Source: Dimorphilus gyrociliatus (taxonomy: Eukaryota > Animalia > Annelida). From it: a DNA stretch of 64,000 nucleotides. The stretch is from the NCBI GenBank assembly GCA_904063045.1, contig CAJFCJ010000047.1, positions 1-64,000 on the forward strand. The letters run 5' to 3'. The position numbers and the translations under genes were made by a program. The notes under the pieces are model-generated. The model saw nothing but the letters and a program-made list of their open reading frames with translations, was not told the origin of the DNA and did not search any database. This document shows, one piece after another, positions 6,660 to 63,829 of the stretch (the stretch's first letter is position 1; every line of letters begins with the position of its first letter).

Positions 6660-7475
6660 ATAAAATATCTAATTGAAAAAAGAATTGTTGAATTTACAAC
6701 TTTTAATAGATTGGTTGTGAAAGAGATGGTGTTGAATTTCGTATATGAAAATGTGAATTTTTGGCAATTTTAAATTCCTTATTACAATTATGACAAGTAG
6801 ATATATACATTGTACTCAAATTATATTAAGAGATGAACACCAAAAAATATTAATTTACAAAAGTCTTAAAAATACATTTTTCTATAAGAATCATTGATAA
6901 AAGCCAGGTAATTTTTTCAAAATTTTCAAGAAAGATATTCGTTCAAACAATGAAACAGTATTAGTTTTTGCAACTGAACATCACTTAAAACTTTTGTATA
7001 AGGCTAAAACATGGATGGTACTTTCAAAATTGCAGATCCATTTGTTCAACAATGTTTACTTTAACTCCAAATCAGTTTAACAAAATTAAAAGTGAACTGG
7101 CTTAAAAAAAGAATTTGGACATTTAATGGAATAAATAGAAGACAATGGAATAAGGGTAGCTTTTGGCCTCCAGAGACTTGGTCTGTTTTTTACTAAGCAG
7201 TCAGAACCAATGATTTTCTGGAAGGATTTTATAACAGATAAATGAAAACATTGGAGCAAACTTGTTATTTTACATGACTATTGATGAATTAAAGAGGGAG
7301 GCTGAGTTAATTTGTATATATGAAAAATTGATAAGTGAAAGGAAAATGTTGCAAATGCAAAGAAAAGTCTATTCAAAAATTTAACATTATATTTTTTCCA
7401 TTTGGAAAAATTTGAAAGTTGGTGACATCACAGCAAGCCACCTTTTTGATGTTTGTTCAGCTTTAAATTATTAAG
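6660..7475 (+). mobile_element. Decayed MULE transposase relic, related to the elements at 57156-62741
   Basis: Fragments VLVFATEHHLKLLYKAKTW-MDGTFKIADPFVQ, WPPETWSVF, RTNDFLEGFYNR and IDELKREAELICIYEKLISE, with deletions. Confidence 0.8.
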
Positions 7476-16090: not shown

Positions 16091-19000
16091 TTATTGTAAA
16101 CAATCACTCATACTACTCACAATGAAATATATATTTTCCAGTGTAACATCTCCTTCAAAATGTAAATCAGACATGTGTGCTGTACTCAAATTGTTGCAAA
16201 TATCTTTCAAGATTTTAGTAACATTATTAAAATGATAGAAAGATTTCTTTCTTCTTAAATCATCTAAACTCTTTACTAGACCATTCTGTTTTAGGTGTAG
16301 TTCATTCATTCTAAAGTATAATAAATCTAACACAAAGAGAAGATAATTAAAATGTTAATTCAACAAACAACATGACAAATATACATTTGCTATTTTTCTC
16401 TTCTAAAGCATTATCAACTCTGCTCTGTCTGTAAAAAATATATAAAAAAAACTGCAAAATATATCCCTAAATGCCTTATATTTACATTCTCTTCTCTCTC
16501 TTTCTCTTCACAGATGAATAGTATGATTTTCCATCACGGAGAGTGTAGAGTAGAGGATTTATCACGGAATTTAATGGCAACGTAATAATCACTATAGAAA
16601 CGTAGATATCCTTCTTTACGACCAGGTTAAAGAATGCAGAGTACACTCCTAATTTGTTAGATAAAATGAGAAATATCATAATTTTAACCTTAGCAAATAC
16701 TTAACCTAAAACAGAAATGGGAAACCAACAACAAAGATTTGATATAACAATGAAAAAGGCATTTAATTTAAACTTTTTCTGTTGACTTTTAAATTGATCT
16801 TCCTTAATCAATTTTCTTCCAATAAGTGTCTCTCTCCAAATTCTTACATATAATCCAATGATTAATAGACATATTGCAGAGATTGATATTCCAAAGATCA
16901 CAAATGAGAATAGCCAACCTTCAATTTTCTCACTCGACATGTAAAGGGTAAAACATACTGGACTTCTTGAGTAGTATGTCTGCAATTTGTTTGTCAGTTA
17001 AAAAATTATTCATTACTCTATTATTTTTCCATACTTCATAGATAAACAATGGAAAAGTAGAGATAAATGCTGATAAAATGAATACAAATGTCACCAGCAA
17101 TAATACTCTATTTTTTGTAAAGATTCTCTTGAAAGGATAAATAATGATAACATATCTTTCTATGGTAATGAGAAGAAGACTAAGGGATGAGAGTAGAATA
17201 GACCAACTGCAAAACCATCCCAGAATTATGCAGAAAAGACTATTTCTCCAATCATAGTCATTTTCAATATAATTTTGTCTGAAAAATAAATCAACACTTC
17301 CAACAATAATCAAATAGATTGACATACAAAAATCAGCGAGTGACAAACTCAAATGAAACCAATTTTTCTGTTTCTTAGAGAGAATTCCTCTGAAAATCAA
17401 TGATAAACAATTTTCAATGAAGCCAACTACTGCAAATATCCACAAAATTGAACGAAGAGAATCAGATTCTAGTAGATCTGTACAAGAATTGAATAGAGAT
17501 TTTGTTGGATGACAATCTCTTATGTTTTTGGAATATTGCCAAGAAAAACAGCAAAATGAGAAATATTCACTGTACAATACTTCCAATGATTGCAAAGGTT
17601 TTATTAATAAACTCTTATACTTTAACGGTAGTTTTGTACTTTTCAAAGATAATCTCTTCAGATTTGAAAGAGGAGAGAATGCATTCTTACTAAAATCATG
17701 AATATGTGAAAAATCAATAATTAGAATTCTGAGTTGTTTCAAATTCAAAAAGAATTTTTCACTCAAATAAGAGATGTCTGTAAATGTGAAATTGATAAAC
17801 ATCAAATATGGCGATTTTCTTAATGAAGTTTCAATGTTTGTCTTGATAATTCCACGATTTATGACCAAATTTTGAAGATTAATCATTGGACTGGAAAAGA
17901 TAAGAGATAAATTGAAATCCTTACAGTTGATTAGAGAAAGATATGCAAGATTTGGATATGTTTTTGATATAGTAAAATTGAATAGTGTAGAATTATGGAA
18001 TGATAGAAAAGTTGTTGAAAAGTCTTTTAAGGATGGAAAATTTACAAATGTTGATTTGTGATAAATTTCAATTTTTTTAAATTTGGCAAACAATATTGGA
18101 GTTGGATGATTTAAGACATTTTTAAATGAACATTGAATTGAATAGAAGTGACTGCAAATACAATGATTAGGGCATGTTGCATTAAAATCGCAATATAATT
18201 CATCTGTGCCCATTTGGCAATCAATAATGTGATTGCAGATGTCACTCAATGGAATAAATGTTCTCTCATTCTTGCACTTAAGATATCCTCTGGGAAAAAA
18301 CTGGTCTTTTGAATTGAGATTAATTAGATTTGAATGATAGATTCAAAACTGTACTATTTTTACCGCAATTTTGTTCATCATCGTAGTGAATACAATGCAC
18401 AATTCCGTCACATACTTGCTTTATAGAAATGCAGTATCCACCTAATTTACATAAATACTGTCCATAAGGGCAGACTGTTTTACTGCAATTTTCCAGTTCA
18501 AGAAAGGGATAATGGACTTTTGTTAAAAGATTTCCCATTGAATTGTATTCAACTCTACATCTATATTTTTCAGATCTACGAAATTTAGAGCAGTCATTAG
18601 CATCGTAACTACTCAACGATTCGCAAACAGATTGTTTTTCATCTTCTCTATCAAGACAATTGATTTGAAAATCACAAACTCTCCTGTTTGGTATACATCT
18701 ATTATCGCAATTATAGGCCTTGTATTTTTTACAATCATCTAGAAATGTTATATTATTAGTTTGTCTCTTGTTTTTAATAAGAAATTCAAATTGTAACCTT
18801 GTCTTGCTGTCAATGATGTACCGCATTTTTCATCACTTCCATCAAAACAGTGCTTTTCATCATCACAAATCAATTTCTCAGGAATACATTGACCATTGTC
18901 GCACCTGTAAAAAAGTTTTTTTTTTTTAAATGTTTCAGAATGTTCAATGTCAAGGTCATTTACCTATTTTCTTTGTCATTACATTGAAGCCTTTCTGAAA

Positions 19001-22000
19001 ATACGATAAAAAGTATATGAAATGTTTAATTTGCAGTTGTTTCGGTTTTTGTCTTCCTACCGCAATTCAATTCGTCCAATTTATTAGGACAATCATTGAT
19101 ATAATCGCATACAAATTGATTTAAGATTGTAGTATTTTCATTGCAGTAGAATAGATTTCCAATTGTTGAGCAATTGGCCTCATCTTCCCCAGAGAAGCAA
19201 TCTTTTCTTCCATCGCAAACACTAATAGAATTAATACAAATCTTATCTTTCCTACATTGAAACAAGTTGATTGGACAATCCATAAAATCTTTATTTTCTG
19301 TATCATTCGTCAAGGAAAAGTTAAATGTATCTGTTAAATCATTTATGGTATGATCACGTGACAAATGAGAAGAATGTAAAGGAAAAGTTTGTAATAAAAT
19401 TTCGGAGAACTTACAAGGTATCTTACAAAAATTGTCAGTAATTATCTTCTTATCGCAGTTTAATGAGGTTATTGAGTAAGCTACATGCTTTATTTGGATC
19501 CCTTCAGCATAATAACATTGTGAGTATTCTTTGTGATGGAAATACTCTCGAAAACGTTTGGAAAGTGAAAGTTGTAGACATTTTCTAAAGAATCTGCCGA
19601 AAGAGAAAAGAGAGATTATTTGTTTGTAAAAGAAAAAAATATGGAACAAATGTTTGCCAAACTTTAAATCAAAATTTAATGTAAAACCATAAAACTTGTA
19701 GGGTTTTCCATCACTGAATAGAAGATTTCTATACCCTTTTGAATCATTGAGTACTTGAAATTCTTTTCAGAAAATCTTGCATTTAAACATGCAGTATACA
19801 AATAGCTCTATATAAAAATATTTTGTATATACTTCCTGGTACAATCTTCATGTTTGCAAATGCACTATATTCAATTCCCTGAGATAAATCAGAGAGAAAT
19901 TTGAAATCATCACTGGAATAGTATGATAGAGTTGAGTTTCTCTTTTTACATTCCTCTGATGCCTTATTTATAGATAATGGGCGATGATAGGTAATTTGGA
20001 TATAGCAACCGCCATGGATAATATAGGCTTGAGGATCCAGGCAGAAAAATTCTTGAAAAGAAAGCATAAATGATAGAAGAAGAATTTATATTGATACACT
20101 ACTCTCATTATGATTACATTCCAGTATATATTTTCCAAATAGGTCATAGAAAAATCCTCTTTTACTGTTTGCAACAAAATGACTTAATAAATACCAAGAG
20201 TAGTTTGTCAAAAATTTTCAAAATACAAACCCTCCGTAGGAATAATTCAGTGAAATGTTACACTGAGTAATGTCACCAATATTTGGACAATTTATGGAAA
20301 ATGCATGCTCCCTATGTATTCTTAGATTAGATGAAGATTTTTCTGCTTTTAGCCTACCATTCTTAAATCCCAATGATCTACAAATGTTTAAAATCTCAAA
20401 GCTCTTAAGATTTTGCGGAATTGATCTAAGCCAAGAAAGGCCATGAAACATGATTAATGATCCTGCAAAAGACCCGCTTTTTGGCTGGTCTTTGCTTGTT
20501 GATAAAATAAAACTGGTATCAGTTCTATAAAGCATAAAAGTATTATCTGAAAAATTGAATATTCAACTATTCAGTATATATATATATATATATATTCGTA
20601 AAGTGTATTCAATTACCTTGTATTGTAGTGGCTGCCCCACATTCTACTGCAAATGTGGTACCCCTTTTGAATCCATCATGAAATTTACATCCACCATACA
20701 ACTCATATGTCCAACTGCAAGACTGCAAACAAGGAACTAGAAAATTTTCTAAATGATAGCTAACTTGTGGGCATCTATTGGAAAAGTGTGGTCTAAAAGA
20801 GTGTAGAACATGAGGGTTTGGTAATCTATTCCTTCCGCCAAGTCTGCAAATCATTTGACCAATTTCTCTTGATTCAAGTACATTTATAAAGATAATTGGA
20901 AAATGGCCAAAAGTTTTTGATAAAAAAATGTAAGATATTTTATCAGTAAGATTTTTTTGAAAGATAAATAATTTGTGAAAATCTGACATAAACTCCACTG
21001 AAAGATCTGCAAATCAAAATTATTGCTGTGTAGACTGATAACTAATAGAGTATACAGACTACTCAACCTTTGAGATCATTTTTTTCGCATTCCAACACCT
21101 TTGAGGAAAAAGATATATCACTCCTTTCCTCTTTGGAGAATTCCAAAAATTTTACAATAGTTCCATTGACAAGCTCTACAGCAATATTTTGCTGTTCAAC
21201 AATTAAAGATTGCCTATTATTCTTGTAAAATAGTACTTGATGGCAAATGTTACCAGTTGTAACATTTGCCTTCCAGGAGGCTATAAATGTTTTTCGATTG
21301 TGTCTAACAGCGATGTCGTACAACTCACGATGACGAGATGATCGAATAGCAAATAAAACTGCATTAGGAAAGAAAGAAAGAAAGAATTAATGTAAAAAAC
21401 ATGTGAATAATACCATTTTTTTCTTACATGGAAAATCTATTTTAAAACATTTTAGACAAAAAGACGCAGTACGGAAATTTTTTACTTGAATCTCTTTTCT
21501 TTTTCAAACAGCGAAAGTATACAATAATATTTGAAAATAGAGTTTAAATATTTGAAAATCTTACAAAACGTGTTGGCCATTTTCGTAGAGTAGTATCACT
21601 GATAAGTTCGCTGAAAGTTTTTTTTTTAGTTTTTTGACAAAAAAATTATGGAGAACAACAGGAAATATCCCATGCCTTTGCTGCCATGACTTTAGCATAC
21701 TTCCTGTTCACCTCCTTATCAAATTTCTCACCATTCTCATGATTACAAGCTTCAGCATTAAAATGAATGTCATCATAGCCAAGAGTAATACACAATCCAA
21801 CATGAAACTCTTGTTTTATACCAGGTCCAAAAGCAACACCAATCTCCCTCTCTTCCATTGATTTGATAGTGACAAGTACTCTGCCATAAACTGATACTCT
21901 ATCTTCCTTTATTGTTCTCAATGAGTAAATTATACTTGTATCATTTAGATGATCAGATAACAATTTTCCTTGATAAGAACACCCAAAACTGCTGATAACT

Positions 22001-48621: not shown

Positions 48622-50384
48622 TCAATCAACAATGATATCAAATTTAGGATGATTCTTAAATATTTCTTCAATTTGTGTAGATTGATTGTCATTCAGGTTA
48701 CAAAAATTAAATTGAATATCCTTTATCATATTTGATGAATGAATTAATCCATCACAAATTGCTAGAATTCCATTTTCCATATCTTTATTCCCATCTAAAT
48801 TGATAAATTCTATTCTGGAAAACTTTTGCAACATTTTTCCAATTTCCACACATTGATTTTCATTTAAATCACAAAAACTAAGTTCAACTGTTTTTAAGGT
48901 ATTTGATGAATGAACTAAACCATCACAAATTTTAAATAATCCATTTCCCATATCTTTATTCCCATCTAAATAAATTAATTCGATTTTAGACAAATTTTCC
49001 AGCATATTTCCAATTTGTATACATTGATTTTCAGTTAGATTACATGAACTTAAATCAATTTCTTTCAAAGTATTTGATGAATAAACAAGCCCTTCACAAA
49101 TTTCTTTTAATCCATTTCCCATATCAGTATTTCTCCATAATCTGATTATTTCAATTTTAGTACAATTTTGTAGTACATTGCCAAGTCTTGTAGATTGATT
49201 TTCAGTTAGATTACACATACCAAAATCAATTTCTTTTAAGGTGTTTGATGAGGGAATGAGTCCGTCACAAATTGCCAAAAGTCCATTACCAGCATTTTTA
49301 TTCCCATCTATTTTGAATACTTCAATATTTTGACAATTAATCAAAAAATTTCCAATTTCTGTAGTTTGTTTCACATTTAGATCACAAGAACTAAAATCAA
49401 TTTTTTTTAAAGTATTTGATGAATAAATAAGTTGATCACAAATTTCTACTAATCCATTTCCCATATTTGTGTTTTTCCATAGTCTGAATACTTCAATTTT
49501 AGAACAATTTTTTAACAAATTTCCTAGTGATCTACATCCCTTTTCATTAAGATTACATGAACTAAAATCAATTTCTTTTAATTTATTTGATGAATGAAGA
49601 AGTTGCTGACAAATTTTTAATAGTTCATTTCCAATATCCTTTTCAAGAAATAACTTAATAACCTCTATGTTAGAACAATTTTCCAACATATTTCCAATTT
49701 GTATACATTGATTTTTAGTTAGTTGGCAGTAACTTAATTCAATTTCTTTTAAATTACTTGATGAATAAATGAGTCCATCACAAATATCAAGCAATCCATT
49801 ACCCATTTTCCTATTCCAACCTAATTTAATAGCTTCAAGTTTAGGACATTTTTTCAGCATCTTTCCTATTTCAGCACATTGCTTTTCATTAAGATCACAT
49901 AAACTCAGGTTGATTTCTTTTAAAGTATTTGATGAATTGACAAGACCATTAGCAATCCTGAACAATCCATTTCCCATGTCTCTATTTCTGCATAATGTAA
50001 TCTTTTCAACTCTAGAACAATATTTCAATGTACTTCCAAGTTTTATATTTTGATTTTCATTTAGATTACAAAAACTAAAATCAATTTCTTTCAAGGTATT
50101 TGATGAGGAGATGAGCCCATCACAAATCTCTAAAAACCCATTTCCCATATCAATATTACTCAATAATCTGACTATTTTAATTTTAGAACAATTTTTCAAT
50201 GTATTTCCAATTTTTGCCCATTCAATTTCATTTAGATGACAATCACTGAAATTAATCTCTTTCAAAGTGTTTTTCGAAGATGCAATTCCATTACAAATAT
50301 TTAAAAATCCTTCTTTCACATCTTCACTTCTTGCTGATCCATTAACTACAATCCTAAAACCATTTTTCAGCATATTTCTGGTTT
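48622..50384 (-). CDS. Ribonuclease-inhibitor-like LRR array (about ten 56-aa units) in one uninterrupted exon
   Basis: Open frame of about 587 codons with alternating 28-aa repeats (SNTLKEIDFSxCxLNExQ / IExIxLxxNxDMGNGLxxICDGL). There is a splice-acceptor-like ttttttgtctatag at the 5' end and an ATG at 50373. Confidence 0.9.
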
Positions 50385-50637
50385 CTATAGACAAAAAATA
50401 AAAACACTTATGAAAGAGTGATATCCTGTTTGGATATTTTTTTTATTATAACCATAGTATCATGGTTTTAGAAAGGTTATAGTGAAATTTGTGGTTACTA
50501 TTGAAAAAAAATGATATGACACACAAGTTATTTTTATAGGGTATGATAATATATATGTATGTAGTCGATGAAGGTAGCAACTAAAATCTAAGGTTTTGTA
50601 ATCAATGAGTAACAATTATAGGATGTCCCTTTTATTT

Positions 50638-51187
50638 TCAAATATTGACATGAATTTCATATTGCTTCAAAAAATCCATTGGAATTTCATTCATGTTTAT
50701 TTTAAAATCTAAATCTCTTGGGTGCTTTTGTTTGTTACTCTCTTTATATCTAGAAGCTTTTCTTTTTGGTGATTCTAATTCTGGCAAGTCTTTAGTATTA
50801 TCTCTAAATTTTAGGATAATATCTTCTGCTATTCTTTCACCAGTTTTGTCATTGTCATCAATTGCCATTTCCTTCAAATCCATTCTTGATTGAAGAACAT
50901 TTTACAGATTTTTATGCAGCTTACAAAGATGATTTTCATTTTTTACAATGAACTTTGATACCTTTTTGTAATATGTTTGCAGGACAATGAATTTTAGCAT
51001 ATCTTTGAGTACATCTGTAGGTGATGAAACATTCTATTTTTCTTTTCATAGAATTTTTGTATAGGAGTAAGTCTTTATGTTTTGCTCTTCCCCCTACAAC
51101 AATTTTGAAATCATCTCTTTCAGTTTCCATGATGTTACACTGTATATCCATCTCAAATTCATCATTTATATCAACTCTCTTTCCCAT
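50638..51187 (-). mobile_element. MULE N-terminal (FLYWCH-like) relic
   Basis: FKIVVGGRAKHKDLLLYKN...ITYRCTQRYAKIHCPANI...KHPRDLDFKI, with a frameshift. Confidence 0.75.
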
Positions 51188-56800: not shown

Positions 56801-57154
56801 TTGGATTTAACAAGTGCATTTCATCATATTCCAATCAAAGAAGAAGATAAGGAGAAAACTGCTTTTATTACACCATTTGGTTTATTTGAATTCAACCACA
56901 TGCCATTTGGTTTGGCAAATGCACCTTCACACTTCAGCTATATCATGCCAAATTTTGTTATTAATGGATTGGAAAACTTCTGCATTAATTATATGGATGA
57001 TATTATAGTTTTTACCAAAACATTGGAAGAACACTTTGTAGCTCTACAGAAACTTATGGAAAGAATCAAGGAAAAAGACTTTAGAATTAAACTGAGCAAA
57101 TGTGCATTCTTACAAGAATCAGTTCAATTCCTTGGTCATAGAATTACACAGAGA
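53818..57154 (+). mobile_element. Ty3/Gypsy LTR retrotransposon, 5' part (probable LTR, PBS, gag, protease, acidic insert, RT), cut at the N
   Basis: Gag-like ORFs at 54092-55063, protease motif LYDSGA, RT motifs (QRPYR, WASPIVFVKK, VDYRKLN, FSILDLTSAFHHI, MPFGLANAP, YMDDII). The LTR start is approximate. Confidence 0.92.
54060..54074 (+). promoter_or_regulatory. Probable primer-binding site (tRNA-Ser-like)
   Basis: TGGTGCAGTCGACAG lies 4 nt after a ..TACA LTR-like end. It resembles the TGGCG(C/T)AGTCGGCAG tRNA-Ser PBS with two transitions; the tRNA sequence is recalled, not checked. Confidence 0.45.
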
Positions 57155-57155
57155 N
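57155..57155. other. Single N: assembly junction or gap
   Basis: RT coding sequence stops at the N and a transposon TIR starts immediately after it. Confidence 0.9.
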
Positions 57156-60100
57156 GGGGTCGGGAAAAAACGTCCTTGGGAAAAAACGTCCCTGGGAAAA
57201 AACGTCCCAGGGCGGGAAAAAACGTCCTAATTGTTGGGAAAAAACGTCCTATGCCTGGCTAAAGATATACTTGGCATAATTATTTATACTTATAATCAGA
57301 AATGTTTTTCTCTTTGCTGTTTATTTCATTTATAGAATAAAATATTAATATTTTTGAAGAAAGGGATATGTATTGTGATGTTTTTACCAGTTTTCTCTGA
57401 ATTATGTAATGCTATTAAAAGAGAAATGAGTTATTTCCTTGTCTTGTCTGTAAGTGAAAGATAAATTTTGCATTTCTTGGCATATTTTCAGGCTAATTTG
57501 TTTTTTAAGCATTGAAACTCTGGTATTGATTTAGTTTATTGAATATTACAAGATTATACATTGTTTAAGAACACTTCTTTCCAGTGAGTTATTATTTATA
57601 ATTTTTGTATAGGCAGCCATATTTGATAGTTGAAAGTGAATTTATTTTTGCAGAAACTTAGTAATGGCACCTGTTGTATTAATTGTAATAAAAGATTTTA
57701 TGGCAGACAGAGAAAGATGAAATGCAATGACTGCCAAGATTATGTCCATGCCAAATGCATCAAAGGTCTGTCTCTTTATATGTTTTTATTAAATTATTCA
57801 CTTTTTTCATTTTCAATTTAGAATCTGAAAGAGTATTTTGCAATAATTGTGCAGAAAAGTTCAGGATTCATGAAACTACATGTTCACTTTGTCATCATAT
57901 CTGTAAAGGTGATATTTACTATGTAAAACATACATTTATTTAACTTTGCTTAATATTACAGAAATGAAAGATGATAAGTGTTCTTCATGCAAAAGTTTGA
58001 GTGAAAGATATTGTCTCATTAGTTTATCAGATGTGATCAATGATGATCCTATTGTAAAAGCTGCTCTGAGTTGTACTCATAATAATATGGTTAAAGACAA
58101 TTGTAGTCTTAAAGAAGTTAGCAATACTTCTAATATGGAGGAAAATTTATTGCATGAAAATGAAACTGAAAATAATGAGAATATGGAAAGCTCAGACAAA
58201 TTTCATATTATTATTGGTGGAAGTCAAAAAGGGAAAGATATTTTGACCAACAATGGCTATGCTTTTAATATAAAATCTAGAAGTGACAAGAGAACCATCT
58301 GGAGATGTTCTGTTAGAAATAAGAATATTCAATGTCCAGTTATTATTCAACAAAAAGAAATATTTTCATAAAGAGTAAACATGAACACAATCATAACAAA
58401 AGGAAAAGCCTTATTGTGAATATTTCTGCTAGAAAAGAATTGAGAGCAATCTCTAATGCAGACATCAAGTCATCTGGAAGAGCAATTGCTGAAGATCTAT
58501 TAATTAATTTAAATAAAAGTGAAAATAACCTACCAAAACTGGAAAATCTGAGGAGATTAGCCAATATCAATAGGCAAAATCAAGGCCTAAAGAACCAAAC
58601 GAAATTGATTTTGAACTTAATACAACATTTATACCAGATGATTTTCTTCAAAGTGATATTGTTGTAAGAAATCAAAGAGTTTTACTATTTGCTTCTAAGC
58701 ACCAGCTGTCTTTATTATGTAAAAGTAAAGTATGGTATTTAGATGGCACTTTCAAGGCTGTGAAGGATCCATTTGTACAGCTTTTTTCTGTTCATTCTTT
58801 TATTAAAAATGATGGAGAAGCAAAACAAATTCCATTAGCATTTGCTTTTTAACATCAAAGAAAAAAAAAGTGTACAAAATGATTCTTAAAGTAAGTATGA
58901 TTTGGTTGCTTAATTCTGTTTCATTAACTTCATCTTATCAAAAGGAGATTCAAAAATTGACAAATGGTTTTCAACCTGACAAATTTGTAGTTGATTTTGA
59001 ATTAGGTATATGGAGTGCTCTTAACTCAGTTTACCCTAATATTCCTATTCAAGGTTGTGTCTTCCATTGGACACAAGCTGTCTACAGAAAAATTCAAGTA
59101 AGCTTATATTTAAATTCAGTGCTTGGCCTTATTATTAAATTATTGTAGAATTTGGAGTTGGGGTGCGAACGTACCTGGGTGTGAACGTACCCGGGTGCGA
59201 ACGTACCCTGGGCGGGTGCGAACGTACCTGGGTACGTTCGCACCCTATTTTTATATTTATTTTATTTTTGAATTTTTGAATAAAAGATTTAGCTATAAAT
59301 CTAAAAGTATGTATTTAAAAGACTAAATATTATACTAAAAAACAATAAAGCTTGACAAATGATATTTATGCTGGAGAGTAGATATGGGATGTCTGCATTA
59401 ATAGATCAATTGATGTCAATTTGTTCAACTTGAAATCATCCCATAAATCAAAAATTTTCTTTTGGATGTCAATATACTTTTTCTTTTGATGTTTGTAAAT
59501 CCTTTTTTCTGACAGTAATTTCTCATAAACTGCAATCAACTCAGACTCTTTTTTTAGCTCATCAACCAGCATGTAAAAAGAACCTTTAGCAGGCAGCTTA
59601 CTATTCATTCTTTGATGCCATCCTTCACAATCATTATTGGTCCTAATAGACAAACCAAAAACTGACCAGTTATTTGGTTTCCATAATTTATTTTTGATCC
59701 AGTTTGTTTGGAAGTATTGCAGCAGGTCCAAAAATCTATTTTTTTCACAAAGTTCTGCATTTATGCTGTCAAATGTTGGTTGAATAATATGTGCTGGCAA
59801 GAATGGCAGAGCCATCAATTTTCTGAAATCTTTCCAATCATTTCCTTTTTCTTTGTATTTCTTTACATAGCCAAGAGCCTATTCAATAATATAAGTTATT
59901 TAATAGATAATGTTATATATATTTGAATGTAACTGACTTGTATTTTCCTGTATACTGCTTGTGTGAAATGAAATACACAACCTTGAAATTCAGTGAGGGA
60001 TATACTTTTGATAATGCTTTCCATAGTCCTTTTTCAAAATCCATTGTAATTCTTTTTGGATGAAAATCATTGATAAGATTGTTGATATGCTACAAAAAGC

Positions 60101-62741
60101 AACTTTATTTATCATCACTTTTGAAGAGATAATATGAAATATTTACTTGAAATGCTTGTAAGTATGCTTTGGTATGCTTTGAAGTCAGAAAAATAAAAAC
60201 AAGAGGAACTTGCTTCATATCACCACTCTTCTTAACAAATGAGTGAATAGTGACAAGTTGATAAAATGGTTCTTTTACAATCTTGAAAGTACCATCAATG
60301 TACCAACAGTTGGATTTTGATAATAAATTCAGCTGATGGTTTGTTGCAAAGATTAAAATTCTTTCTCCATTTTCACAAATATCTTTCTGCAAAAATTCAT
60401 CAGGCAAAAATGTTTCATCTAAATTAAAGTTGTACACTTTAGGTTCCACTGGCCTAAACTTTTGTCTATTTGAGTTTGCCATTCTCTTCAAATAGTTGAT
60501 ATCAGGAAGACAAGTTGCATTGGGTTCATAGGATAGAAGAACTTTTTCAGCAATGCTTCTTCCAGATGTTTGATTATCACTTCTGCAAACAATTTTCAAA
60601 TCTGTTTTCACTTTAATATCCACTTCTAAATTCTTTTTTCTGTTGTGATTATGTTCCAAATTGCCTTTGAGAAATAAATTTCCATTTTGTCTTATTCTGG
60701 CCACACATCTTTTCTTCTTACTTCTCACACTGCACACCCAAATAGTACTTGATGGTGTTTTATGTTTAACAACAAAAGAATATCCATCATTCAGTAAAAT
60801 GTCATGTCCCTTTCTACTTCCTCCTTTTACAATCTCAAAATCACTTTTTGTGGATGATTCACAATATTCTTCAGCATTCTCTTCAACTTCCTCCAAAGAG
60901 TCTAGGTCCATTGATTGGCATTCTGAAAGAACATGATTTTCATCCTCCAATATTGATTCCTCAACTGCAGCAATCTTATTTCTTTCATCAATAAAGCTTT
61001 CTTCAGAATTTACTTTGAATTGATGAATTTCCAGATTAGTTAACTTCTTGAGCATGACAGTACATTTTCTTTTGTTACAAGGTTTGCAAATTGGTATGTT
61101 ATGTGTTTCTATAAGAATATGTTAAAAAATATAATTACATGAAAGCTGATTAAAGAGTTACATACCTGTGCATTTCCTATGAATAAGATTCTTACAAAGG
61201 CTGCATTTCAAATATTTTTGCCTTCCATAAATTGTTGAATGACAATTGTGACATTTGAAAGCCATTTTTTAATCTTCAATCAAATGTAGATGGTTATCTA
61301 AAAATATTTCCAGTTATCAATAAATTTCCTTTCCAAATATTCAAAATGGCTGAAATTTTATTTATGAAAAATATTCAGCTTTTTCACAATTGAAGATAGT
61401 ATATTACATCAAAATATCATGAATCAACAATCTCAATGATTAGATATAAATACTCACTTCTGTTGAAGCTTCCAAGAAGAACTTTGTCCAAATTTATTCA
61501 GTAAATATAGCTTTACTTTTGCAAGGATAAATATTCCAAGTGAAAGTTTATTTAATAACACTATCACTATTAAAATGGCTGCTATTTCACTTTCAACAAC
61601 ATTTTCTTTTAAAGTAGTAATTTAATATTGATGGGATATGTATTCTATTTAATATCTGCATTCTATCAAATCAATATATTAACAAATATATAATGAAGGA
61701 ACAGAAGGAAAAAAGGGTGTCAATGTACATGTTTATTCAAAAATTCAAAAATAAAATAAATATAAAAATAGGGTGCGAACGTACCTGGGTACGTTCGCAC
61801 CCGCCCAGGGTACGTTCGCACCCGCCCAGGGTACGTTCGCACCCGCCCAGGGTACGTTCGCACCCGGGTACGTTCGCACCCAGGTACGTTCACACCCGAC
61901 CCCTAGAATTTGGGATACACACAACAATATAATATGGAAAAGAAGAAGGCAGGACTGCTGAAACAAGTTTTGGCATTACCTTTTCTTCCAGATGAAGCCA
62001 TTCTAAACAGTTTCTACATGCTAAAAGATGAGGCCTTTGAGAGAAATGAATTTTTGGATTTTTTCCAATACATTGAAAGTACTTGGATTAAGCATTCAAT
62101 TTGGACACCAAATTGTTGGTCTGTATTTGGTCTTGCCATCAGGACCAACAATGATGTTGAAGGATGGCACAGAAGAATAAATGAAAAGACTCCTGCAAAA
62201 GGGTCATTTTATATGCTCATAGATATTTTAAAACAGGAATCAAGTCTTATTCCAGTTGTAGAGAAACTTCTATCAGAAAAAAGGCTAAAGAAGTATCAGA
62301 AGAAAAGTGTCATCCAGAAGCAGAAGCAAGTATTTGCTGTTTGGGATGAATACAAATTGGGAATGATTACATCTGCTGTCCTCTTGCAGAAGATTGCATT
62401 AATCTATTCAAAATAATTCTCAGTGTCTTAACATACTTTATACTTTATTCTAGTAACTTTTAAACTTTGTATAACATTCTTAGCTTTTTTCATTTTTAAT
62501 ACATTTTAATAAACATATATTCATTATTAATTATTATATTCTCAGTATATTGCCATTGGTTCCCAAAATAGAGCAATCTTTTTTAAAATTCAAATATCTT
62601 TTCCCACTACTTGTTTTTCCCAACCTTGGGACATTTTTTCCTAACCTTGGGACGTTTTTTCCCACACTGGGACGTTTTTTCCCACCCTGGGACGTTTTTT
62701 CCCAGGGACGTTTTTTCCCAAGGATGTTTTTTCCCATACTC
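57156..62741 (+). mobile_element. MULE (Mutator-like) DNA transposon with repeat-built TIRs, encoding a PHD-like, FLYWCH-like and DDE transposase with introns
   Basis: TIRs made of GGGAAAAAACGTCC repeats (5 left, 6 right). Motifs YLDGTF, VVDFE, GCVFHW and RTNNDVEGWH are present; the last exon is 61907-62416. Confidence 0.93.
59155..61903 (-). mobile_element. Nested MULE transposon (2749 bp) with 9-bp TSD TAGAATTTG
   Basis: Identical TSDs at 59146-59154 and 61904-61912. The TIRs are built from GGGTGCGAACGTACC repeats plus an AT-rich arm. The transposase starts ATG at 61265 (PHD-like), has YIDGTF, TMDFE and RTNNDCEGWH, and carries one 1-nt frameshift near 59995. Confidence 0.96.
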
Positions 62742-62831
62742 TTTTCAACTTATTTGCTTTTTTAAGTTAAGTTTCTTAGTTATAGACTTTTTCAATTACT
62801 GTATATTATAGTTATAGTACTTTTTTTAATA

Positions 62832-63829
62832 ATGGTGTGGAGTAAAGATATCAGAGAGCTTGTAGTCACAAAATATGCAGAAATAAGGAAATTAAGGGCC
62901 ACAGCAAGGGTTTTAGGAATGGCATCATCATCAGTAAGAAACATCATCAACTATAAAGAGCCAGAGCAAGACAATAGACAATATAAAAGAAGCTTTCAGA
63001 CAGAGAGATAGCCAGAATGAAAAGGATCATCAAGAAGCTGAAAGATAATAAGGAAAGAGTGACAGCAGCAAAGGTTTTGAAAGAATTAGAAGTAGATGTA
63101 AGCATTAGAACCATTCAGAGGGAGCTAAAAAGGCAAAATTTCAAATACCAAAGAATCAGGCAAAGAACAGATCTCACCTCTAAAGATTGTAACCAGCGAA
63201 AAGAATATTGCCTCAAAATGATTAGTGATAATCTAGACTGGTCTAGAGTAATTTTCACCAATGAGGCTAGATTCTCACTAAGTGGACCTGATGACTTTAG
63301 GACCTGGACCAACAATAGCCAAGAGGACTTTAGGGTGACGAAAAATATGGGAAGAGGTGGAGTATTGGTCTGGGGGTTGATCACATCTGATGGCGTATTC
63401 GAAGTATGGAGGATAAAGAAAAGATTAAATGCAGAAATTTATAGCTCCTTCATTGTGGAACATGTTCTTCCTGTTATAGAAGAGATTGAGGCAAAAATGG
63501 GCAGGAAGTACATCTTCCAGCAAGATAATGCTGGCTTACATACAGCAAGAGCAACAGCAAGGGCCTTTAAAAAAAATGAAATTAAGACCATTGATTGGCC
63601 AGCAAGGAGCCCCGACCTGAGCCCAATCAAAAACATGTGGCACCTAACAAAAACAATGGTCTACTATTGGCCACAGTTTGAGTCAGAGGATGAATTATGG
63701 GAAAAAATTAAACAGTGTTCCTATGAGCTCATAAAGAAGAATCCAGAGTTGCTTCCAAATTTGTATGATGGAATGGGCCATAGGATTAGTAAATGTATCG
63801 AAAGGGAGGGTTGGCACATACAAAGATAA
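62832..63829 (+). mobile_element. Tc1 (DD34E) transposase, catalytically mutated
   Basis: IFT(N)EARF, FQQDNA and SPDLSPI(K)N with 34-residue spacing; frameshift near 62987; TIRs not confidently identified. Confidence 0.9.

Follow-up and report, generated by a model that had tools for sequence, protein, structure and literature searches.

The window analysed here, the first 64,000 nucleotides of contig CAJFCJ010000047.1 from the annelid Dimorphilus gyrociliatus, contains a FLYWCH/MULE transposon of 2,749 bp (59155-61903), with its gene on the minus strand, nested in a related 5.6-kb MULE (57156-62741). A perfect 9-bp TSD, TAGAATTTG, can be read directly from the sequence on both sides of the inner element, at 59146-59154 and 61904-61912 (neither copy is assigned a strand). 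The left junction runs ...ttattg TAGAATTTG gagttggggtgcg..., with the inner element starting at 59155, and the right junction runs ...cacccgacccc TAGAATTTG ggataca..., with the inner element ending at 61903. The TSD includes the AG of the last, 51-nt intron of the outer transposase gene, and the AG of the right copy (61905-61906) is a regenerated, far acceptor. Direct reading of the junctions confirmed the original prediction that the inner MULE had inserted across the outer acceptor and that its TSD regenerates AG|AATTTG.

A young inner MULE family

With a 9-bp TSD, long TIRs and a MULE-type DDE transposase (PF10551) with a CxxH motif, the inner element is a MULE. Its TIRs comprise arms of 93 nt (59192-59284/61732-61824, 98% complementary) and 68 nt (59161-59228/61830-61897, 97%), and the subterminal word GGGTGCGAACGTACC occurs in the element in 12 copies against an expectation of 0. 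The gene is made up of four exons on the minus strand (61265-61166, 61108-60147, 60089-59938 and 59878-59366), in which Pfam recognizes a FLYWCH domain (4.4e-7) and the blocks WYIDGTF, DFE, GCVFHF and RTNNDCEGWH align with homologues. Exon 3 measures 152 nt instead of 153: near 59999 it has lost one C from a run of four (C4>C3) by comparison with two other family copies.

These two copies, at loci L001 and L002 of the same assembly (GCA_904063045.1), are 99.4% identical to the inner element over 2.73 kb and are bounded by perfect 9-bp TSDs of their own (TATTACTAT and GTCTACTTA), defining a very young MULE family in D. gyrociliatus. Their gene models, P0156 and P0157, carry both PF10551 and FLYWCH. 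The copies were recovered by a full scan combined with a profile search; when exon 2 or the last exon of the inner gene served as query in word searches restricted by length, only relatives of 42% identity or less came up. Exons were searched one by one, leaving the joined (spliced) protein model and the joined empty-site sequence out of the searches. Neither the inner nor the outer family has copies in three further D. gyrociliatus MULE loci (L003-L005, 66 kb) or elsewhere in the window, which holds only two degraded MULE relics without TIRs. None of five window ORFs was present in the protein collection on exact look-up and, as expected, the inner element had no match in the phage collection.

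Enrichment of this family at splice acceptors had been named as a check of the original prediction, and the two additional insertions show no acceptor targeting (three sites in total). One of the three copies sits in unassigned AT-rich DNA, and the one at L002 splits an NLR exon that is otherwise open; its TSD, GTCTACTTA, has no AG on the host strand. Nor does the family recur as gene introns, with one of three copies, a very small sample, at an intron edge. We weighed the proposal that the family prefers acceptor-like targets (TAG within the 9-bp target) in the manner of Introners, which would lower the cost of genic insertion, and regard it as very unlikely. In its favor, CTA (TAG on the other strand) is found on the sense strand of the element in all three known TSDs, whereas about 9% of random 9-mers drawn from these sequences contain it. 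However, its offset varies from one TSD to the next (positions 6-8, 3-5 and 7-9), unlike a fixed 9-bp staggered cut; there are three sites only, and the pattern was spotted post hoc. Moreover, of the two sites whose host gene is known, only one has an AG on the host-gene strand, and the L002 insertion interrupts an exon that is open. On the grounds of the varying register and post hoc discovery, the shared CTA was judged not significant as a target motif.

The outer MULE and its transposase gene

The outer MULE (57156-62741, plus strand) spans 5,586 bp with the nested element and about 2,828 bp before the insertion. At the 5' end, five GGGAAAAAACGTCC words come after GGGGTC, and in the reverse complement of the 3' end the same words come after GAGTAT; the word is found 11 times in the element, against 0.22 expected. 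Its TIRs form an inverted repeat at 57162-57227/62670-62735 with 66-nt arms (97%). No copies of the outer family were found anywhere, the best protein identity being 60%. The outer element has no matching 9-bp TSD (left flank cacagagaN, right flank ttttcaact), and its flanks belong to different TEs, a gypsy RT and a Tc1/mariner element, with a single N at 57155 adjoining the left end. This lone N and the absence of an outer TSD would be in keeping with an assembly artefact in which repeat copies were misjoined, a reading that we consider extremely improbable. The inner element is full-length and aligns collinearly with the two other copies, both its borders show the same 9 bp without mismatch, and on its far side the outer reading frame resumes exactly. 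A misjoin would not yield a structure that combines exact duplication with frame continuity across the insert.

Exons 1-4 of the outer transposase gene (57664-59097, plus strand) were delineated by three-frame translation, tblastn and Pfam. They encode a PHD-like finger, an extra zinc-finger exon, FLYWCH and the MULE core as far as the CxxH motif, and are separated by introns at 57766-57821, 57909-57961 and 58891-58944. Pfam detects FLYWCH at 7.3e-8 and MULE at 1.5e-5, the latter scoring 25.7 bits in a single exon and falling just below the cut-off of 27.6; in tblastn, the gene is strongly collinear with PF10551 proteins. The last exon (61907-62416, plus strand) has 169 codons plus TAA, is open throughout, carries an RTNNDVEGWH block and shares 53% identity with the last exon of the inner element.

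As assembled, the outer gene does not give an uninterrupted ATG-to-stop frame after splicing. Its ATG (57664) is not in frame, and exon 3 changes frame three times, at 1-nt breaks near 58354-58358, 58577 and 58846-58849; tblastn follows the frame order 2>1>3>2 across the gene both with homologues and with inner exon 2. The two elements have five frame breaks in total (four outer, one inner), all of them single-base deletions and four of them in short homopolymers. In alignment with homologues, the outer gene keeps every catalytic-motif block and shows no nonsense substitution. Since single-base homopolymer deletions are also the signature of residual PacBio consensus error, and the assembly was built with PacBio RS II, Quiver and Pilon, the outer gene might really be intact. 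Assembly error as the sole cause was judged less likely: at the homopolymer-deletion rate of the inner family (3 in 8.2 kb over three copies), about 0.7 outer breaks are expected versus 4 seen, and the 53 A/T runs in homology-defined intact exons contain no break at all.

Two candidate acceptors for one donor

The original last intron of the outer gene (59098-59148, plus strand) is a 51-nt, phase 0 intron of the form GTAAGC...TTGTAG. Its donor GT (59098-59099) follows ...AAA ATT CAA, and its own AG at 59147-59148 is the near acceptor; the inner element has an intron of its own at the homologous position (59879-59937, minus strand). Joining the donor to the far acceptor restores the frame exactly, as had been predicted, and the join of 59097 to 61907 agrees with homologues residue for residue. 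In the homologue P0001, the two sides of the join correspond to consecutive residues, 372 (ending at 59097) and 373 (starting at 61907); a second alignment (A1) is equally contiguous, and the reading then runs for 169 codons up to the normal stop. The near acceptor leads to the early stop that was also foreseen, reading NLELGCERTWV (11 codons) and then TGA. The far AG in the right TSD copy is a candidate splice site supplied by the TSD, with an intact exon directly after it. As frame restoration across a TSD is automatic, it is no evidence of function, and in this caution lies the practical value of the locus. The geometry is real, but it is not beyond chance expectation: of the approximately 2,828 registers at which an insertion could enter the outer element, 32 (1.1%) would copy an acceptor AG, of which it has four, and 8.4% would preserve all exons together with the full set of splice sites.

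Very probably, then, this is an ordinary nested cut-and-paste MULE insertion whose duplicated acceptor is a geometric by-product, the far AG being used at most to a minor extent. A young FLYWCH/PHD-type MULE copy would have inserted antisense into a related, probably already decaying MULE in a transposon-rich region. The 9-bp stagger of the cut would have taken in three bases at the end of the 51-nt intron and six at the start of the last exon, and gap repair would then have duplicated AG|AATTTG. Because TSD formation copies whatever the cut spans, the second acceptor is an automatic consequence of it; it is probably not an adaptation, and selection on splicing is not expected in such a transposon graveyard. 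As the evidence stands, the locus is a well-defined case of a 9-bp TSD duplicating a splice site by geometry alone. Transcripts of the outer gene, should there be any, would mainly lose the native 51-nt intron at the near AG and meet a stop 11 codons on, and early polyadenylation may be expected inside the AT-rich insert, whose sense strand carries nine AATAAA and four ATTAAA signals. The predicted product would lack the C-terminal 169 residues that bear the conserved NND-EG-H block.

Alternatively, the far, TSD-regenerated acceptor might be used appreciably, with a 2.8-kb intron removed and full-length outer transposase made, tuned by acceptor choice, fold-back and antisense transcription. 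The exact in-frame join, its agreement with homologues and the chance that the frame breaks are consensus errors fit this account, which we nevertheless consider very unlikely. The outer ORF, as assembled, is broken four times upstream of the join. All seven introns of the two elements measure 51-59 nt, while the far acceptor would require one of 2,809 nt, and the near AG, the first one past the native branch region, belongs to a retained intron of normal size. D. gyrociliatus has a median intron of 66 bp and splicing adapted to short introns, which it splices best (PMC7854359). As read in a transcript of the outer gene, the right TIR (61771-61903, plus strand) presents four CCCAG|G sites, followed by UUCAC and a C-rich tract. 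These acceptor-like decoys upstream of the far AG (AG at 61807, 61828, 61849 and 61882) are all out of frame and all give stops, and the tract before the far AG has 15% U versus 40-60% in real introns.

Predicted TIR folding bears on both sides of this question. In a local hairpin of the right TIR (-81.7 kcal/mol, z = -6.8), three decoys out of four are masked, and the final 24 nt, which are C-rich, stay unpaired and include UUCAC, which resembles a branch site and lies 14 nt before the far AG; the far acceptor would therefore be usable in principle. Against this, a long-range duplex of the right with the left TIR, with a gain of about -100 kcal/mol, pairs all of 61865-61903 and the whole 40 nt before the far AG, so that the fold-back would hide the splice signals rather than present them. 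The original prediction proposed that the TIR fold-back could loop the insert out, and the burial of these 40 nt in the predicted duplex argues to the contrary. Overall, its structural part stands (nested MULE, 9-bp TSD, frame join and near stop), and its functional part found no support, with several points against it. The broken outer gene, the retained native intron, and the decoys and low U content count against the ideas that the inner element hides in an enlarged intron and that acceptor choice is an on/off switch for the outer transposase.

Comparison with Introners and other spliced transposons

Introners are transposon-derived introns, such as IE1 of Micromonas (Huff et al. 2016, as summarised in PMC11282704). 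According to the descriptions in PMC11282704 and PMC9860276 (Gozashti et al. 2022), the elements carry one splice site and co-opt a 3' AG or 5' GY from the TSD, and pairing of the TIRs is described as drawing the intron ends together. Splice sites derived from a TSD are already known from Introners. Like these, the inner MULE is a TIR transposon whose TSD supplies a candidate splice site. However, Introners are mostly short and non-autonomous, with many intronic copies in genes and proven splicing, whereas the inner MULE is a single 2.75-kb, transposase-bearing insertion whose splicing is hypothetical. It also enlarges an existing intron instead of creating a new one, with the host's own donor, and the other two copies of its family are not introns.

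Were the far acceptor really used, the locus would show a full-length DNA transposon being tolerated in an animal via intron mimicry, and it would tie the biology of nested TEs to intron gain by the Introner route. More generally, the C-rich TIR end of a young, transposase-bearing animal MULE might, together with a TSD-derived AG, act as a usable 3' splice site, so that elements landing on or close to an acceptor would in part be removed by splicing along with the enlarged intron. We think this highly improbable. If true, it would mean Introner-like behavior in an autonomous annelid element, in which one MULE nests in another without fully silencing it.

Plant and nematode transposons are also spliced out of pre-mRNA, as in the Ds, dSpm and Mu alleles of maize and Tc1 in Caenorhabditis elegans, cases that are backed by RNA evidence and phenotype. 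As in those systems, the inner MULE is a DNA transposon in a gene, removable in principle via host or cryptic splice sites near its ends. Unlike in those systems, its host "gene" is itself probably a dead transposase.

Within D. gyrociliatus, TEs are concentrated in gene-free, closed-chromatin islands, and the DNA transposons reported are MULEs and Mariner (PMC7854359). The present locus resembles the MULEs of such islands in its MULE-in-MULE nesting, and it combines a 9-bp TSD with long TIRs in which subterminal words stand in tandem. Compared with other nested MULE-in-MULE insertions, its sole special feature is the position of the cut across an intron/exon boundary.

Insertion of a MULE at a splice acceptor

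The nested MULE is a young element that inserted in the ordinary way and by chance took a splice acceptor into its target-site duplication (TSD). Direct reading of 58500-62500 delimits a complete transposon at 59155-61903, with its gene on the minus strand. Its left end begins with GAGTTG and its right end, reverse-complemented, with GGGGTC, both followed by words of the GGGTGCGAACGTACC type, and its arms are 97-98% complementary across 68 and 93 nt. All 12 copies of this 15-nt word in the window fall within the element's two ends, where none would be expected. A perfect 9-bp direct repeat, TAGAATTTG, lies on both sides (59146-59154 and 61904-61912). The element is nested within a second one at 57156-62741 whose termini follow the same pattern, GGGGTC... 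on the gene's 5' side and GAGTAT... on its 3' side, but are built on another word, GGGAAAAAACGTCC, present in 11 copies. By Pfam, both code for FLYWCH plus MULE-type transposases; the two genes run on opposite strands and share 53% identity in the last exon, and the inner gene has its own phase-0 intron (59879-59937) at the position homologous to the outer gene's last intron. In the outer transposase, a small cysteine-rich exon (57822-57908) that the inner gene lacks separates the PHD-like finger from the FLYWCH region, which gives the outer gene one more intron (57909-57961).

Outer exon 4 ends at 59097 with ...GTC TAC AGA AAA ATT CAA, followed by GTAAGC and a 51-nt intron ending in TTGTAG at 59148. 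The three terminal bases of this intron and the first six of the next exon make up the TSD. The original prediction that the duplication carries the intron AG with it and that the exons join exactly in frame across the insert proved correct in every detail. In tblastn, residue 372 of a homologous protein maps to 59097 and residue 373 to 61907, and in an alignment with four full-length relatives, exon 4 runs directly into the last exon with neither gap nor overlap. Reading from the near acceptor (AG 59147-59148) gives NLELGCERTWV and then a stop, the 11 codons that had been predicted; reading from the far acceptor (AG 61905-61906) gives 169 codons and a normal stop. Exons were used singly in the homology searches. 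These turned up no other copy of the outer family (best protein identity 60%), and hence no empty site for comparison.

Choice between the two acceptors

The structural part of the prediction was thus right, but its functional part, in which the far AG is used and acceptor choice switches the host transposase, is unsupported and disfavoured. All seven introns of the two elements measure 51-59 nt, and the D. gyrociliatus genome paper puts the median intron at 66 bp and describes splicing machinery suited to short introns (PMC7854359), whereas the enlarged intron would measure 2,809 nt. The first AG past the native branch region (CTTAT about 17 nt upstream) is the near one, which would also be transcribed 2.7 kb ahead of the far one. 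A sense-strand reading of the right terminal inverted repeat (TIR) meets four CCCAG|G decoy sites, each leading to a stop, before it comes to the far AG, whose 20 preceding nt are 65% pyrimidine but only 15% U, against 40-60% U in real introns. Nine AATAAA and four ATTAAA motifs on the insert's sense strand also count against its use.

Fold-back of the TIRs had been proposed as something that could loop the insert out. Pairing between them is predicted to be very favourable in RNA (cofold -261.9 vs -161.3 kcal/mol for the arms alone), but the modelled duplex takes in all of the 40 nt that lead up to the far AG. It would thus mask the branch and pyrimidine signals of that acceptor, and splicing would then rely on the native branch point, from which the near AG is reached first. 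Speaking for the far AG, the right TIR alone is predicted to form a hairpin (-81.7 kcal/mol, z = -6.8) that would enclose three of the four decoys and leave the last 24 nt free, with UUCAC 14 nt from the AG; far-acceptor use at a minor level is conceivable on these models. Transposon-like predictions were removed from the published annotation, so the missing gene model at this locus carries no information on transcription.

Introners and other transposon-derived introns co-opt splice sites from TSDs, with TIR pairing drawing the intron ends close to each other (PMC11282704; PMC9860276), and Introner-type elements are mostly short and non-autonomous (PMC12130899). What the inner MULE is seen to have in common with them is geometry alone. 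Introners are defined by removal through splicing, and they recur as introns, a recurrence not seen in the three inner-family copies.

The inner family and its targets

A full scan of protein representatives returned two proteins 100% identical to inner exon 2, DgyrCDS14435 and DgyrCDS14643, both from D. gyrociliatus (GCA_904063045.1). Their loci, L001 and L002, hold one full inner-family copy each, and since these are 99.4% identical to the window copy over 2.73 kb and have perfect 9-bp TSDs (TATTACTAT and GTCTACTTA), the family must be very young. Against both, the window copy shows one substitution, a TIR longer by one 21-nt unit, a hairpin loop in the flipped orientation and two homopolymers each shorter by 1 nt; the loss near 59999 (C4>C3) breaks inner exon 3. 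The extra subterminal unit, at 61846-61866 in the gene-5' TIR, is present in the window copy only among the three, and the central loop of the TIR-internal hairpins (CCTGG or CCAGG) switches orientation between copies.

Before the insertion, the outer element measured about 2,828 bp and had four introns. An acceptor AG would be duplicated at 32 of its insertion registers (1.1%), and either an acceptor or a donor at 2.3%, while 8.4% would spare all exons and splice sites. A single case such as this one is thus in line with chance. The three known TSDs are AT-rich like introns (11-33% GC, with 20-28% in introns here and 29-35% in exons). At L002 the insertion falls within an open exon of an NLR-type gene, and the TSD there lacks an AG on the host strand. 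CTA occurs on the element strand in all three TSDs; we rejected it as evidence of targeting, as its offsets vary and the pattern is post hoc and drawn from three sites.

The annotated genes DgyrCDS14643 (NACHT-LRR, 2,396 aa) and DgyrCDS14435 run through the MULE copies (L002:6239-6470 and L002:9100-9300; L001:6001-9948). Both models translate TIR words into peptide (GCERTWVR...) and use an AG made of the last flank base and the first TIR base. Because the NLR exon is open across the insertion site, they look like chimeric models produced by recent insertion.

Condition and surroundings of the outer gene

The outer exon homologous to the continuous inner exon 2 passes through frames +1, +3, +2 and +1, switching near 58354-58358, 58577 and 58846-58849, where introns would not fit, and ATG 57664 is separated from the first finger cysteine codon by 8 nt instead of 9. 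Each of these breaks is the loss of 1 nt, in three cases from an A/T run. They could be residual long-read consensus errors, the published assembly being PacBio RS II polished with Quiver and Pilon. However, 53 A/T runs in homology-defined exons elsewhere in both elements contain no breaks, and at the homopolymer-deletion rate of the inner family's three copies (3 in 8.2 kb), the outer coding sequence should hold about 0.7 such deletions, where four are observed. These counts suggest that the outer copy is probably, though not certainly, dead; it would not have been so for long, since all catalytic blocks are kept and the alignment contains no nonsense substitution. Across the MULE copies, frame breaks and length differences (57664-59097, ~59999, ~60098 and the L002 match of 59555) are all single-base deletions, mostly in homopolymers, as would arise either from mutation by slippage or from long-read consensus left unpolished in repeats. 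This pattern bears on any claim of an intact or dead transposable element gene in this assembly.

The window's single N (57155) abuts the left terminus of the outer MULE, whose ends, read together with their flanks (57147-57164 and 62733-62750), lack a matching 9-bp TSD. A gypsy RT open reading frame (ORF) reaches the left end, and a Tc1/mariner element follows the right, its transposase in two frames (HTH 62832-63011; DDE_3 63017-63829) split near an A-run at ~63000. Given the N, the missing TSD and the unlike flanks, an assembly join or a later rearrangement is possible. At 6904-7468 (+) and 50662-51175 (-) lie the degraded remains of two MULE transposases, neither of them with recognisable TIRs. 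The MULE nest lies near LRR-type host genes, as the window also holds LGR-type receptor ORFs at 16930-19649 (-), with LDLa, LRR and 7tm_1 domains, and a 590-aa LRR ORF at 48622-50394 (-) built of nine 171-nt tandem units.
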